From Marsupella aquatica (lineage: Eukaryota > Plantae > Marchantiophyta): a stretch of DNA of 64,000 nucleotides. The position numbers and the translations under genes are program-made. The notes beneath the pieces are model-generated. The model did no database searches. It worked only from the letters and a program-made list of their open reading frames with translations, and was not told where the DNA came from. Below, piece after piece: positions 56,888 to 64,000 of this stretch (position 1 is its first letter; every line of letters starts with the position of its first letter). The stretch is from assembly GCA_973895155.1 (NCBI GenBank), contig OZ316899.1, positions 7,133,241 to 7,197,240 on the forward strand. The letters run 5' to 3'.

Positions 56888-59237
56888 CTAAAAAGGTGTG
56901 TTGCGTCCCTTCTTCTTTGGGCGAGAATGAAGGGTGGGTACAGGTCTAGCATCATGAGAGCCCTCCTCCCTCTGGCTGCCCACAACCGTGGCAGCCACCT
57001 GCTCACCAGATGGCATGGGTTGGCCTGATGCAGGCCTAGACCCTGACCCACTAGATGCACCGCTAGGGTGGTCAGGCAAGGTAGATGTCCCACCAACCCC
57101 CGACACGGTAGAGTGAAAGGAGGCCTCGATCAGCTCCTCCCGCCAACCTGCTAGAGTGATGGGATGGTGCGCTGACAGATCCTGTGGGTGGCCCATGTCG
57201 TGTTGTACTCCCACCAGACTCACGAGATGGTGCGCGCCCTCTAGATCCACCATCCGGCACGTCGCCACTACCTCGTCGGGAAGGGCCACCTGCACCAGAT
57301 ACTCCTGCGCAATGGCCTCGTCCCATGCCATCACCTCTACTACCCCCTGAGTGCCTAGGCCCCGCACCCCGTGATGCTCCAGAGCAATGGGAGCCCACAC
57401 CATCAGCAGCATGTGACCCACCCCTCCCTGCTAATGGGGCAACGGCACCAGATGGGGCAACAACACCTCGGACCTGAGGAGTAGGGGTGACTATGGGCAC
57501 CCTCCCCAACCCTGCCTCAGCATCCTGCTCAGAATCTGAGTCCAACTCCTCCAACCCAGACCCCTCCTCATCCTGCGCAATAGGGTTTAATTGCGGTTAG
57601 AATGAATGGTCCCGACCATAACTCTAACAAATTCATGACAACCTTAAACATTATGTCACCCTAGGGTGAACACTTACCTCTCCCAACTCATCCTCAAGGT
57701 GGCGCTTTAGAGTGCGGGGTCCATCCATCTTTGCCAAATTCCTCTCCAACGGCGCAATAGGGCGACCATACTCCCGCTCCTGAAATTTAAAGATCCAAAC
57801 CATAGAGGCTAGGTTAATATCAAATCTAGTATTAGCGTGCCCTACCCTAACCAAGCCACCCTACATAGCCCTAATGTAACCTTAAACCATAGTTCACCCT
57901 AACTTATACTTTACCCTAGTAAAAAATTAACGTTAAGTACGTTCATTCAAAAATTTAAATGTTTGCCGAGGGGTCCGATGCAGAGTCCAATACAGCTTGC
58001 ATCGGACGTATATTGGATGCGTAATAGGCAAAATGGCATGACACAGTGTCCGATGCTGCTTCCAATGCAAAACCTATCGGATGAGTATCGAAAAGAACAG
58101 GCCCGAGAGCAAACACGAGTTTTGCAAAGGGTTTAAACAAAAAACATAAGGCACAAACAACTCATTCTTCATGCGAGGAGTCAGGTGATCAGGGAGGAGA
58201 GGTGGGGAGGAGAGGGAGGGCACTTACAAACTCAGCCTTCAATCGATTGGAGCCGCCTTGCCCCATCCGGTGAGTGATGGTTGGCCTCCCCTGCACTCTC
58301 TCCAATGCTGCTATGATGTGCCTTGGTGGTTTGGGGAGTCTTGCTGCCTGAGCTGCCCATTGTTGCAGGTTCTGTTGAAGGGGGAGGATATCAACATTCT
58401 CCCTAGCCTTTTGCTTCTCCTCTACCAGCCTAATTTCGTTGTCCCAATGTCTTCTTTTCAGCCAGGCACGGACTGAGAGTTCCTCCTCAAGCCAAGCCAC
58501 CCACTCATCGGGGGAAACATCGTCTGGACAACCCTCCTCCCTGATCACCTCTGCATCCACTGCCAAATCTCCAAGGTACTTTCTGAATTTCTCTCGCTGA
58601 TGATTGCGCATGTCTGAGAGTGATGCTGAAATTTGTTTGTTTAGGAACCTGTCATCAATGTAGACCCCGTTCCTGAACCGTTCCTTCACCTGCTCTCTGA
58701 TTCTCAATCTCTCTTCCTCCTTCTTCTTGCCCCAATAATCCAATGGCCCCAAATTGGCCCTCAGCACCTGCTTGAATTGGCTTCGGAATAGATGGTAGCT
58801 CTTAGGCAATGGACCACCACCCGAATTGAGAGCTAGCTCAGGCCTGAGAGCTCTCTCTGCCTCCTTTCGCCTCTGCTCCTCCAATCACACCTTCTCAATT
58901 GCCCTAGCTTCTTTTTGAAGCTTTTTCTCTTGTTTTCTTGGAGACTGTGTCTCCTCTGCATCCCCTTGCCTCTCTTTGCCTCTTTCTTCCTCTTCTTTGC
59001 CTCCTTCTCACTTGCAATGCTTGCAGCAGCAGTCTTCTCTGCCTCACGCCAAGAGGCATCAATCAGCGTTTGGAGGAGTGGGACTACTCTCTCCGCGTCC
59101 TCCACACTCAGCCCTGCCTTGGCCACGAAAATGTCCCTCATAACTTCATTGTATGGCTGGGACGGTCCCCCTTGCTCTCCACCACCACCTGATCCCCCTT
59201 GGTCTCCCCCACCACCTGATCCCCCGGCCCCCTCCAT
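56888..59237 (-). pseudogene. TnpA/Ptta-like (Transposase_24-like) spliced gene
   Basis: CPDDVSPDEWVAW and THRMGQGG motifs; exons 59237-58228, 57779-57678, 57572-; GTAAGT donors and CAG acceptors in phase 0; frameshift near 58900-58960. Confidence 0.7.
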
Positions 59238-59880
59238 CTCTCCTCCTCCTTGATCCAGCTTCAAAAAATTTGAAAAACACCAAGTGCGAAACTGGGCCCG
59301 ACGCGCGGGTCTTCGCACCTGCATCGGTTCATTTTTCCAAAACAAAACCTTCTGCTTCCGATTCTTTTTGTTTCGGACTTTGCAAAACCAAAGGTATCAG
59401 ACACGCAATCGGACTTTCCAAAACTATCTGCTTTGGACCCCTCGTCCTTTTCTTGTGGCCGTGTATTTACAAAGTGTGGCCCGTTTCCTATTGCATCAAG
59501 CCCCTCATGAAGTTATATCGGATACCTCTTGGCTTTCCCAAAGGGGGTCCAATATAATGTTTTGAATTTGGGTTGGGTATGGTATTGGAGGGTTTAGAGT
59601 ATAATTTAGGATATTTAGGTTTTGTATGGGGTAAGGGCACATGGTTTGAGTTATTATTTGCTTTCATATTTGAATCCGCGTTTTGTAGGGCTCTACATAT
59701 GTGAACGGGACAGTGAACGTGTCATGCATGTAGAGGGACCTCTTGCAAGTTTCTTTGTTGCGAAGAACAAATTTTGGGGTTTGTACCGGACTATGTAATT
59801 TTTTTGATAAGCTATGGTCTTGCATGCTTAAGATATTGGGCTCTAATTAATGATGCAATTGTGTATAGAGTCTTGGTGTT

Positions 59881-60585
59881 TTAGGGGTGGTTGTGGTGAT
59901 GGGAACTCAATACTATGATATGTGATATAGGATCAAGAAAATACTACAAGAAGTTTTTGTATGAATCATTTTCGGGTGAAAGCCTTTTGTTTCATTTCTT
60001 TATAGGGGATTATGGGTGTACGTAGAGGTTTTATTAGTATAACATTATACCTTTTGTTAGGATAATATTAAACCCCTTCATTAGGCTAATCTTTGTGTTT
60101 GGATTTGATGTGTAGTACCTTGCTTTTGGAGGGGTGGTTAACTTTTTTTGAGGGGGTAGGGAGGTTTCGATTTTGGACAATGCACTATGCATGAAACCGT
60201 GCATCCAGGAGGTATGATGTCCTCTTGCAAGTTCCTTGCAAGTTTAGGGATGGTTGTGGTGATGGGAACTCAATACTATGATATATGATAGACAAAATAC
60301 TACAAGAAGTTTTTGTACAAACCATTTCTGGGTGAAAGCTATTTGGATCATTTCTTTGGAGGGGTTTATGGGCTTAGGGTTATGGGGTTTTACTAGGATA
60401 AGGTTACACCTTTTCTTAGGATAAGGTTCAACCTCCATATATTAGGCTAATGGTTGTGTTGGATTTGATGCACAGTACCTTGCATTTGGAGGGGTGGTTC
60501 AATGTTTGTGAGGGGTAGGTAGGTTTTGTTTTGGACAATGCACTATGCATAGTGTGAGACCGCGCATCCAGGAGGTATGATGTCC
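59881..60585. repeat. ~363-bp tandem duplication between the divergent CACTA genes
   Basis: 59881-60243 resembles 60244-60585 (GGTTGTGGTGATGGGAACTCAATACTATGATA ... CATCCAGGAGGTATGATGTCC). Confidence 0.9.
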
Positions 60586-60899
60586 CCGCTTCACGAGCCG
60601 CATATTTACACTTAATTTGTATGTTGGAATTTTTTTATATGTGGTGTGTTCTTCCTACACTCTTTCGCACTTACAGATTATGTATGCTCATTAGCAAAAT
60701 GCTCACCCATATATGCAGAGATTTTGGATGTCCCACACCTTGTGTGTAGAAAATACGACACAGTAGGTGGCAAAGCGCGGGTATCATTGAGGTACAACAG
60801 GACTTTTGTATGTCATGCATTAATTAATTCTATTTTGATACTCCAACACTTGTCTTCTTTTATGCAGCTTACATGAATGAGTGTACTTCATGCATGCAG

Positions 60900-62222
60900 A
60901 TGTCTACTTCTGATAGTTCCACGTCAGATTCAGACTCAGACACAAGCTCGTCTGAGGGGGAGGTTCCTCCACCCCCTCCTCCAGATCGTCCTTGTGCTCC
61001 ACTAGGACCCATACCTTGCTGGTGTGTGAGATGTAAGGGACTTGTGGTTCGACATGCGTGGGAGACTTGTGAGCACATCGAGAACTATGGCCGCCACGAG
61101 GGTGATATGCCAGGGTATTTGCCTAGCCAGGTACAGATATGTTTATGTCCCCTATTCATTCCATATATGCATTCCAATTTAGGGTATTGCTTAATTATCT
61201 TGCATTTACATCCCACTACTTAATTTATTGATTTGTGTAAAACCATTGTACGTGTGTTGAAATAGGTGCCTCGTAGGCCCCCACCTCCTTTGGTTCCTCA
61301 AGCTGTGTGGTTGGAAGGGTTTCTAGCAAGGGCCAGGGAGTTGCTTGCAGTTTCTCCTACCCAGATGCCTCTTAGCCCACCTGCTCCTATCCCCACTCCT
61401 GTGCCCACACATGAGCATGTAGAGGGGGGACCGGTCTCTCGGCCCGAGGTTGTGACTACTAGGGTCCTACGTACACGACCACAATCTGGTAGATGTAGAC
61501 GGCAATATGGACCACTGGACCAGGTAGACAGCCGAGAGGAGGTGTTAGGTACTAGTGATCGACCAGCCGGTAACGTAGATTATATTTGCGTTGAGGGCAG
61601 GTTTGGACTATCCTATCTCACTGGTAGGGCTGCCAAAGTTTTGAAGGACTTTTCTCCAAGTCTCTTCAAATTTCCAGATTTTATTCCTACAGATGAACCA
61701 GTTCAGATATGGGGTCGCCCTTGGATAGTGAAGGCATCCTCTATTGGTCCTGATATAGGATATGGTCTTTTTGCTTTGGAGGATATTGTGGTCCCTCCAA
61801 AGCCATGGAGCCGTGGTTATGATGGAGAGCACCTTTTTCCTTACATTGGGACTGTATATAACTCCAAGAGTTGGAATATTTTGTTGCGTCAACACCCAAG
61901 TTGGGGTGTGTATGCATTGAGGATGGACTCAGACCCGGATGAGGTCTTCACTAGGCCGTGGCATTTCCGGATGATTGATGGTGACCCTATTCGGAATGGT
62001 AATTTAGCAGGGTACATCAATAGTACCACAGGTAGAGATAGAGGTTTGGAGGCTAATGTAGAGTGGATTCAAATGTTTGGTCCACCTAGACATCCATATT
62101 TTGTGAAACATATGGACGATCATACCATGACAGTAGCTGTTAGGACCATTAGAGCTGGTGAGGAGTTATTATGTGAGTATGAGTGGGATGCACCAAAATT
62201 GTCCTTGCATTGTCGTCCATGA
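60900..62222 (+). CDS. Transposase-associated Cys/His domain plus SET-domain protein, ~395 aa (exons 60900-61130, 61266-62222)
   Basis: Exon 1 CWCVRCKG...EHIENYG; phase-0 intron GTACAG...AAATAG; SET motifs VKASSIGPDIGYGLFA, PYIGTV, GNLAGYINS, AVRTIRAGEELLCEY; no stops. Confidence 0.85.
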
Positions 62223-62345
62223 TAGTTTCTTGGACTTACATACATGTATATATATATGTCAGTTTATTTTACATGTTTACATGAGAATGATGTTGTTCAG
62301 CAGTGCATGTGTTGATGAGATTAATTAATTGATGTTGTATGATAG

Positions 62346-64000
62346 AATCAATATGTAACGCCTGATATTGGGGTAATATCACGAGCTATGCGACAACACC
62401 TTGTTGAGGCCATGGTGGCCAACCGTGGGCATGAACCGCAAAGGCAAGAGGATGGGGTACGACATGATGGTGATGATCCTATCCAAGACCATCTTGATGA
62501 GGAGAGGGCCATGGATGAGCTCATGGACCAATTCTATGATGATCACGATGATATTGGTTTGGAGGACATTGGTTCAACCCATGAAAGGACTAGTCATCCA
62601 CATCCTTCTAGGGGGTCCCAAGACAAGCAATGGGAGGAGGTGCAACGTCATGCCCGTACTCGCATATTTGAGGGGAGTAGGTTATCTCGGCTCTCATCAA
62701 TAATGTTGTTGCTCAACTTGCAGCAAAGACATAGGGCAAGCAATCTACTTTTGGATGATGTTTTTCGTACCTTGCATGGTCGTATTTTGCTAGTAGGCAA
62801 CGCATTGCCAGCCTCTTGGAAAGAGGCTAAACAGGTGTTGAGGTCCATTGGCCTGAAGTATGAGGTGATACATGCATGTGTGGATGATTGCATTCTTTTT
62901 AGGGGTGAGCATGAAAATGCCACTACATGTCCTAAATGTCAGAAGCCATGGTACCGTGATGACATGTTGACGGGGAAGGTACCGCAAAAGGTTATGAGGT
63001 ACTTTCCTCTTATCCCTTGATTGCGACATCAATTCTGATGTGCAGAGTTGGCTGAGATGATGGTATGGCACTCACAAAATCGTTCTGATATGGTTGTACC
63101 CTCTAGTGCCATGCGGATGATGGTTGACTCTCCTGCCAATCGATTTGTAGAGGATAGATGGGGAGAGTTCAAAATTGACCCACGACATGTTCGACTAGGC
63201 TTGGCAGCAGACGGTATCAGCCCTTTTGCATTGACAGGAAAAGCCAAACCATATTCGGTGTGGCCAGTAGTGTTGACAAACTATAACATCCCTCCTTGGA
63301 TGGCCATGAAGAAAGGTCACCTACTACTCTCCATGATTATTCCGGGTCCTAAGCAAGTTAAAAAGATTGATGTGTACTTGCAGCCATTGATTGATGAGTT
63401 GATACAACTGTGGAGAGGAGTGGATTGTTATGATGGACGTCACAACACAGGAGGTTTATCCCGCATATTTACTCTAAAGGCCATCCTTATGTGGACCATG
63501 CATGATTTACTAGGTATGGTAAACCCTTATTTCCTCTAGTACCTAAACCTTGTATTTAATTGCAATTATGCAGATTTTTGCCTTGATGAACCTTATTTTA
63601 TGAATGTGTTTAATTTTCTATGCACTGGGCAGGGTTTGGATATGTTTCTGGATTGCAAACATCAGGCTATCGAGCTTGCTCTACATGTGGACCCGATTTG
63701 GAGGGGGTGGCCAGGCCCAAGTCAAGTACTCTGCAAAAAATTGTTTACATTGGTCATACTAAATATCTTCCACCAAACCATCCTTGGAGGAGTGATCCAT
63801 TCCTTTATGATACTGATGAGGGCCAACCTGACATTTGTCCTCAACCTCAGCAAAAGGATCCAGCATATTGGAGAGAGGTATGGGGGAGAGTTCAGGATCC
63901 GGGTGATCCATTACCATTATTCAGATGTGGCATGACCCGTTTGTCTGCATTGTCACAATTGCCATATTGGTCAGATATGCCCATTAATCACTTGTTAGAC
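62346..64000 (+). pseudogene. Tnp2/TnpD (Transposase_21) transposase, runs off window
   Basis: IHACVDDCILFR, CPKC, VMRYFPLIP, RHVRLGLAADGISPF, YSVWPV, YNIPPW, IIPGPK, IDVYLQPLIDEL; intron 63514-63632; then ACSTC, GHTKYLP, LPYW...HLLD; TGA stops at 63018 and 63036. Confidence 0.95.

Follow-up and report, generated by a model that had tools for sequence, protein, structure and literature searches.

A SET-domain exon within the transposase gene of a liverwort CACTA transposon family, and two splicing routes that may share its zinc finger

We analysed a stretch of 64,000 nucleotides (nt) from the liverwort Marsupella aquatica (GenBank assembly GCA_973895155.1, contig OZ316899.1, positions 7,133,241 to 7,197,240 of the forward strand). 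In this stretch, which we call the window and number from its first letter, a CACTA transposase gene holds an exon that encodes a SET domain. We found that the SET exon is an integral, conserved and multi-copy part of a CACTA family and not a one-off insertion. Taken as a whole, we consider the following explanation reasonably likely. The window would contain the 5' portion of a dead CACTA/En-Spm element, which belongs to a liverwort family of high copy number. In that family, splicing of a single first exon by two routes would yield a zinc finger-SET protein and a zinc finger-transposase, and the SET protein would be an active enzyme targeted by its zinc finger. The family probably makes its own chromatin or protein modifier.

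The SET exon and its conservation in the element family

An initial annotation, made from the letters alone, had proposed a gene with one zinc-finger exon and two alternative continuations. The ORF content of positions 60600-64000, read from the letters and the list of open reading frames (ORFs), matches that anatomy, and all of its parts lie on the forward strand. Exon 1 (60900-61130) has 77 codons beginning with an ATG at 60900. It encodes a CxCxxC...H...H zinc-finger motif, a Pro run and an acidic, Ser/Asp-rich tail, and ends at a phase-0 donor (CAG/GTACAG at 61130/61131). A GT...AG intron of 135 nt, the proximal intron (61131-61265), follows; its acceptor (AATAG/GTG at 61265/61266) opens the SET exon (61266-62222), an ORF of 318 codons made up of a Pro-rich linker (61266-61574), the SET domain (61575-62219) and a TGA stop codon (62220-62222). 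An AT-rich spacer of 123 nt (62223-62345) then leads to the distal acceptor (TGATAG/AAT at 62345/62346). The exon behind it (62346-63513) encodes an acidic N-terminal region and the start of Transposase_21, and is broken by two TGA codons. The transposase ORF is in frame from the distal acceptor, and its first ATG (62388) lies 14 codons downstream, where the annotation had placed it.

The same architecture recurs in other genomes. With exon 1, the SET exon and the transposase exon searched and folded as separate sequences, tblastn recovered the order exon 1, SET, transposase N-terminal part and Transposase_21, on one strand, in a locus of Calypogeia fissa (L001), in three Logan contigs (L002-L004), in two loci of Riccia sorocarpa (L005, which is a chromosome, and L011) and in two ENA assemblies (L006 and L007). 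The closest relative, L009, covers exon 1 and SET only. SET identity to the window across these relatives is 39-77%. All family members that carry an organism name come from C. fissa or R. sorocarpa, and among named proteins the C. fissa gene model P0001 is the closest (59% identity). Thus the SET domain that the annotation had seen between exon 1 and Tnp2 is not a single-copy insertion. Copy number points the same way. Four sequencing runs from two organisms contain 133-1078 related contig pieces per run at 90-100% identity. In all four, SET and the transposase are covered to an equally high word depth, which drops to its lowest values in the intron, the spacer and the region upstream.

The transposase itself is readily recognized. 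Pfam Transposase_21 (PF02992, Tnp2) matches positions 63048-63536 with an E-value of 7e-40. The element's 3' end falls past the end of the window; in L002, L005, L006 and L007, PF13960 (DUF4218) comes after Transposase_21. Within the window, the sequence suggests a phase-1 GT...AG intron at 63514-63632. Joining across it would restore ...MHDLLG/FGYVSGLQT..., as in the uninterrupted Riccia protein P0048. The next transposase exon (63633-64000) is cut by the window end, and residues 435-539 of the related protein P0164 match 63617-64000 by tblastn.

Exon 1 had been annotated as the N-terminal domain of the transposase. Canonical TnpD proteins start with a CPCxxC...H...G zinc finger (PF13963). 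Pfam gave no match of PF13963 to exon 1 at E<=10 in the window, L009, L005, L006 or L007, and the L002 exon reached only E 0.057 (14 bits, with a cut-off of 27.7). A home-made profile of 27 transposase N-termini, many of them annotated as PF13963, scored eight exon-1 peptides at 14.5-23.7 bits (18.8 bits for the window), whereas none of 1600 shuffles scored above 10.0. The comparison is in part circular, since the training set was chosen by a pattern that exon 1 also fits. Membership of exon 1 in PF13963 is thus weakly supported. The claim that SET shares the first exon of the transposase fared better. In two SET-less relatives, P0164 and P0166 (the latter on genomic contig L012), the zinc finger is fused directly to the transposase, and P0166 aligns, from just past its zinc finger, to window position 62364 onward. 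A splice from exon 1 to 62346 would thus recreate the unbroken arrangement of the SET-less relatives, which we take to be ancestral.

Fold and predicted activity of the SET domain

The SET ORF encodes a genuine SET domain. Pfam SET (PF00856) scored the whole ORF at 22.1 bits, just below its cut-off of 22.4, and the domain alone at 23.6 bits (E 7e-5). The same family was matched by 34 of 41 near-full-length relatives, with a best E-value of 6.5e-9, in agreement with the annotation. A profile built from the 41 sequences retrieved LegAS4 from the PDB (E 1.5e-5), followed by EZH2, MLL and SET8, with matches covering the whole domain. The PDB sequence search with the single ORF or with a 5-sequence profile found nothing.

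Structure prediction gave the same answer. AlphaFold2, run on the alignment of 41 relatives, returned a model that is confident across the whole SET core, with a predicted local distance difference test score (pLDDT) of 90.2 and a predicted template modelling score of 0.87; an alignment of five sequences had given a pLDDT of only 30. Foldseek matched the model exclusively to SET domains at probability 1.0 (SET8, LegAS4, MLL1, NSD1). VIA-align superimposed it on EZH2, Set1, ASH1L, SET8, SET7/9, LegAS4 and PRDM domains with Z scores of 10.7-12.7, over 119-141 aligned residues and at root-mean-square deviations of 2.2-3.1 Angstrom. Its neighbours in the ESM Atlas are likewise SET clusters. Because the scores of these structural neighbours are tied, they assign no SET subfamily or substrate class.

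The motifs of the domain lie where the annotation had placed them: GYG at 61758-61766, GYINS at 62010-62024 (YINS from 62013) and GEELLCEY at 62157-62180. Across the 41 relatives, domain residues G62, G64, G92, E197 and Y202 are invariant or at least 90% conserved, and the conserved residues fall in GxG, in the glycine of YxG and in the Glu and Tyr of ELxxxY. The annotation had also read the canonical NH of the S-adenosylmethionine (SAM) pocket as NS, with the Tyr of ELxxxY kept. NS holds throughout the family, its Ser at least 90% conserved, and the Tyr is near-invariant. Judged from the model and these motifs, the domain appears to have the fold and most of the SAM-binding and catalytic motifs of an active lysine methyltransferase, and we predict that it is active.

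The main rival to our explanation concerns this prediction. The SET exon could be conserved as a catalytically inert module, acting as a scaffold, a reader or a decoy for histone tails or for the partners of host methyltransferases. NS in place of NH is what such a module might be expected to show. The SET ORF has neither a pre-SET nor a post-SET module, and its Pfam scores lie near the cut-off. Additionally, a small family profile searched against 1.84 billion representative proteins returned only 120 clusters, with no canonical cellular SET proteins among them. However, an inert module is harder to reconcile with the conservation or near-invariance of GxG, the tyrosine of YxG, the Asn of NS, and the Glu and Tyr of ELxxxY, or with a structural model that is confident over the entire SET core. 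Loss of the His is also not peculiar to this family: LegAS4, the best PDB match of the family profile, reads YINFS (that is, NF) at the aligned site. We therefore regard an inert SET module as rather unlikely, and an active enzyme as the better reading of the domain.

The search of 1.84 billion representative proteins with the family profile found no cellular parent gene of SET. The nearest case outside a transposon is a solitary, intronless C. fissa gene, P0064 (L008, 10001-11512), for a 503-residue protein of the same SET subfamily whose N-terminus differs and is Cys-rich. The gene is flanked by genes for a mitochondrial ribosomal protein and for FtsH, has no transposase in its vicinity and has a twin (97% identical) on another chromosome. 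P0064 may have been domesticated from a copy of the element, may be the source of its SET or may belong to another repeat.

Splice acceptors, selection and flanking features

The evidence for two products comes from the splice sites. A three-way DNA alignment (window, L001 and L002) shows no shift in the position or phase of the donor or of either acceptor, and the introns have diverged. The proximal intron cannot be aligned to L001 or L002, though its flanking exons are conserved. Between the window and L009, it is 78% identical with indels, compared with 97% identity over exon 1, and its length varies among related copies (joints from 61133). The spacer cannot be aligned between loci and has the lowest related-contig depth within the unit, and the sequence straight after the distal acceptor is conserved. 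Conserved splice sites in three loci with unalignable introns make a pattern that exceeds chance. As both acceptors are conserved, the production of two proteins, zinc finger-SET and zinc finger-transposase, is the best reading.

Each acceptor also has support of its own. At the proximal acceptor, P0001 begins with the tail of exon 1, which runs on into the start of the SET ORF with its junction exactly at the proposed splice. The SET ORF opens with AG/GTG, lacks a conserved Met and is conserved from the acceptor onward. L006 and L007 repeat this layout of zinc-finger exon, GT...AG intron and AG/GTG. At the distal acceptor, the window, L001 and L002 agree in that the TAG of the acceptor marks the exact start of the open transposase frame. 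The first 14 transposase codons are conserved, with changes chiefly in third positions. In L002, the codon that is the first ATG in the others is ATA; without a Met at the start of the transposase ORF, translation must come from an upstream exon.

The annotation had proposed a further donor at 61524, by which only the SET part would be skipped. The site is present in the window. However, it is kept only in L009, overlaps conserved Q-V-D codons and is absent from L001 and L002, so that we no longer consider this route.

Based on the anatomy, conservation, fold, selection and copy number described here, we propose a model in which one promoter and one coding first exon, which carries the zinc finger, feed two splicing routes from the donor at 61130/61131. 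Use of the proximal acceptor (61265/61266) would give a protein of about 395 residues, composed of the zinc finger, the Pro-rich linker and SET, and ending at 62222. Use of the distal acceptor (62345/62346) would give the zinc finger-TnpD transposase. In lineages of the Riccia type, read-through would replace the proximal acceptor and yield the same zinc finger-linker-SET protein. The SET protein may then methylate a histone or another protein to the element's benefit, and the shared zinc finger may direct both SET and the transposase to one DNA, chromatin or partner target. The outcome may be anti-silencing, self-limitation or modification of the transposase; we favour none of these. A more specific version, which we put forward only tentatively, is that a liverwort CACTA clade encodes an active histone lysine methyltransferase, that the transposase zinc finger aims it at the element or at integration sites, and that the choice of acceptor switches the element between moving and marking its own chromatin.

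The Riccia-type arrangement bears on this model in two ways. The zinc finger and SET form a single uninterrupted ORF in L005 (10371-11840, on the Riccia chromosome) and in contig L010, and the junction between them (...G/VP...) sits where the window has the proximal intron. Thus the two-module protein is encoded as such in relatives, splicing aside. By the same token, a choice between two acceptors is impossible in the Riccia/L010 lineage, which lacks the proximal intron. In the L010 ORF (433-1704), we noted that the junction codons GTA CCA (Val-Pro) resemble a 5' splice site, and a switch of the L010 type might be one between splicing and not splicing.

The lack of the proximal intron in the Riccia/L010 lineage is one of several observations that weigh against our model, as do the family-wide NS motif and the missing post-SET module. 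A sequencing-run search for the window found four runs, all of them genomic contigs, and no RNA run. The contigs of these runs pass straight through the intron and the spacer, with no splice joints. The distance from the SET stop codon to the distal acceptor is only 123 nt, and we identified no poly(A) site. The Riccia gene models conflict among themselves, and some fuse parts of SET to the transposase. Finally, the window copy itself is damaged in both modules, as detailed below.

The fused Riccia models raise the second alternative, that the family makes a single SETMAR-like polypeptide of zinc finger, SET and transposase by means of a donor near the end of the SET exon. P0048, P0082 and P0093 combine a partial SET with Transposase_21, and L001 has a phase-0 AAG/GTTGTG immediately before its stop codon. 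However, the position of the SET stop codon is nearly the same in all three aligned loci (window, L001 and L002), and no conserved donor precedes it: the window has none, and the L002 candidate is out of phase. Each Riccia model retains a different SET fragment, as expected from the automatic joining of adjacent ORFs, and the R. sorocarpa annotation mixes cDNA evidence with ab initio calls (PMC11735767). A three-module polypeptide is thus improbable, and we retain two separate products. Still less probable is a separate SET gene with its own promoter in the first intron of the transposase, sharing neither exon 1 nor a splicing switch. In this lineage, no RNA run was found that ties exon 1 to the SET exon, as would suit such a gene. 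But an ORF that starts at AG/GTG, with no conserved Met and with conservation beginning at the acceptor, does not look like an independent gene; nor does a zinc finger that is continuous with SET in L005 and L010 and that recurs as zinc finger, intron and SET in L006 and L007 with matching donor and acceptor.

Selection acts on the SET domain across the family. In comparisons of the window with L001, L002 and L009, the ratio of nonsynonymous to synonymous substitution rates (dN/dS) was 0.21-0.32 for the SET domain, about 0.5 for the linker, 0.05-0.15 for exon 1 (0.05 against L009) and 0.04-0.17 for the transposase parts, with dS close to saturation in the distant pairs. The SET domain evolves under purifying selection, and the neutral evolution that the annotation had named as a possible outcome was not seen.

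The window copy, however, is dead. Its transposase is interrupted by TGA codons at 63018-63020 and 63036-63038, and nearly all related contigs read CGA at both positions. We considered an intron at 63020-63048 as the cause of the ORF break (63018-63047) and rejected it, as the break consists of two CGA-to-TGA point nonsense mutations. Among the best-supported differences from other copies, the SET of the window has 17 non-synonymous and 7 synonymous changes, roughly a near-neutral decay. At 46 sites the window has A or T where related copies have G or C, and the reverse holds at 22 sites; this bias is as expected from the deamination of methylated cytosines.

Near-neutral decay of this one copy, together with the known capture of host fragments by CACTA elements, is what could be said for SET as a passively carried fragment of a host gene, in the manner of Pack-CACTA elements and of no function for the element; we consider this very improbable, as the same place and frame are kept in lineages with a SET identity of only about 40%, dN/dS is 0.2-0.3, SET depth equals that of the transposase and no cellular parent gene was found.

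Two further features lie upstream of exon 1. A divergent conserved gene (58189-59345, reverse strand) is present as two overlapping ORF pieces of 231 and 170 amino acids. Pfam gave no family for it at E<=0.01. By tblastn, its homologues occupy the same relative place and orientation in L001 (47-63% identity), L002 (62%) and L006 (27% over 214 amino acids), and this shared position makes it a probable third gene of the element family. The interval from the divergent gene to exon 1 contains a tandem repeat (59860-60590, unstranded) of about two copies of a unit of about 360 bp, in which a repeat search found families D1-D8 at a spacing of 356-363 and 76-96% identity. It is possibly a promoter or subterminal region. 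In L012, positions 1-640, upstream of the SET-less zinc finger-transposase ORF, contain dense short direct repeats (units of about GTCCCACGGTCGTC) and look like a typical CACTA subterminal region.

Related systems and significance

The proposed arrangement has a precedent in maize En/Spm, the CACTA prototype, in which TnpA and TnpD arise from one precursor transcript by alternative splicing. Both systems would use one promoter and first exon, with alternative splicing to downstream ORFs, and in both one product is the Tnp2/TnpD transposase. In the liverwort family, by contrast, the alternative product is SET, which lies upstream of the transposase body, the shared first exon is coding and the splicing is predicted from sequence. 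A second point of reference is SETMAR/Metnase, the primate fusion of a SET gene with the Hsmar1 mariner transposase, which is a single-copy host gene. There, as proposed for the liverwort family, splicing combines a SET domain with a DNA-targeting module of transposase origin. However, SETMAR contains a domesticated transposase within one polypeptide, whereas here a mobile multi-copy element owns SET. Because the SET frame stops before the transposase, the liverwort arrangement is not a SETMAR-type fusion.

SET genes have been described in other transposons. Two reports cite them in HarbingerS and MuDR families of oomycetes, as SET domains captured by Helitrons, and as PAG2 (a DNA methylase plus SET) in Plavaka/EnSpm elements of the red alga Bostrychia (PMC12730594; bioRxiv 10.1101/2025.02.11.637652). 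These cases share with ours a SET lysine-methyltransferase domain that lies inside a DNA transposon and is kept across copies, and Plavaka belongs, like the liverwort element, to the EnSpm/CACTA superfamily. They differ in that the host here is a land plant, the transposase is a classical Tnp2/TnpD and SET has no DNA-methylase partner. Additionally, by their description, the published SET genes are separate accessory genes, whereas the liverwort SET lies inside the transposase transcription unit and appears to borrow its zinc-finger exon. The initial annotation had suggested that a SET isoform of a CACTA transposase was new. SET accessory genes as such were already published for other transposons; in our literature searches, we came across no land-plant CACTA element described as carrying a SET exon, and no SET exon described as sharing the first exon of the transposase. 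What is known, then, is SET in transposons, and what appears to be new, as read from sequence, is a SET exon in a land-plant CACTA element that shares the first exon of the transposase.

The class of function that we propose also has precedents. Arabidopsis VANDAL (MuDR) elements are reported to encode VANC anti-silencing proteins (cited in PMC12730594). VANC and the TET/JBP proteins of fungal KDZ and Plavaka elements are element-encoded factors that act on the epigenetic state of their own elements, which is the class proposed here. Their chemistry is the loss or oxidation of DNA methylation, whereas that of the liverwort SET is predicted to be lysine methylation.

Hosts silence transposons via histone and DNA methylation. 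To our knowledge, only a few transposons have their own tools for altering such marks, namely those with VANC, TET/JBP or one of the few oomycete, Helitron and red-algal SET genes. With a SET enzyme encoded inside its transposase gene, an abundant CACTA family of land plants would extend this short list by a case that can be tested. As the window copy is a pseudogene, the value of the finding lies in the family, in which selection has preserved SET in each of the two liverwort classes sampled (Riccia and Calypogeia). Liverwort transposons have been reported to be marked by trimethylation of lysine 27 of histone H3 (H3K27me3), and a SET-bearing CACTA element fits a lineage with such marks. The family may also illustrate how, in nature, splicing can recombine a targeting module with an enzyme, in the opposite direction to SETMAR. 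If our more tentative version is true, the liverwort family would provide an element-owned, self-targeted chromatin writer in a land plant.

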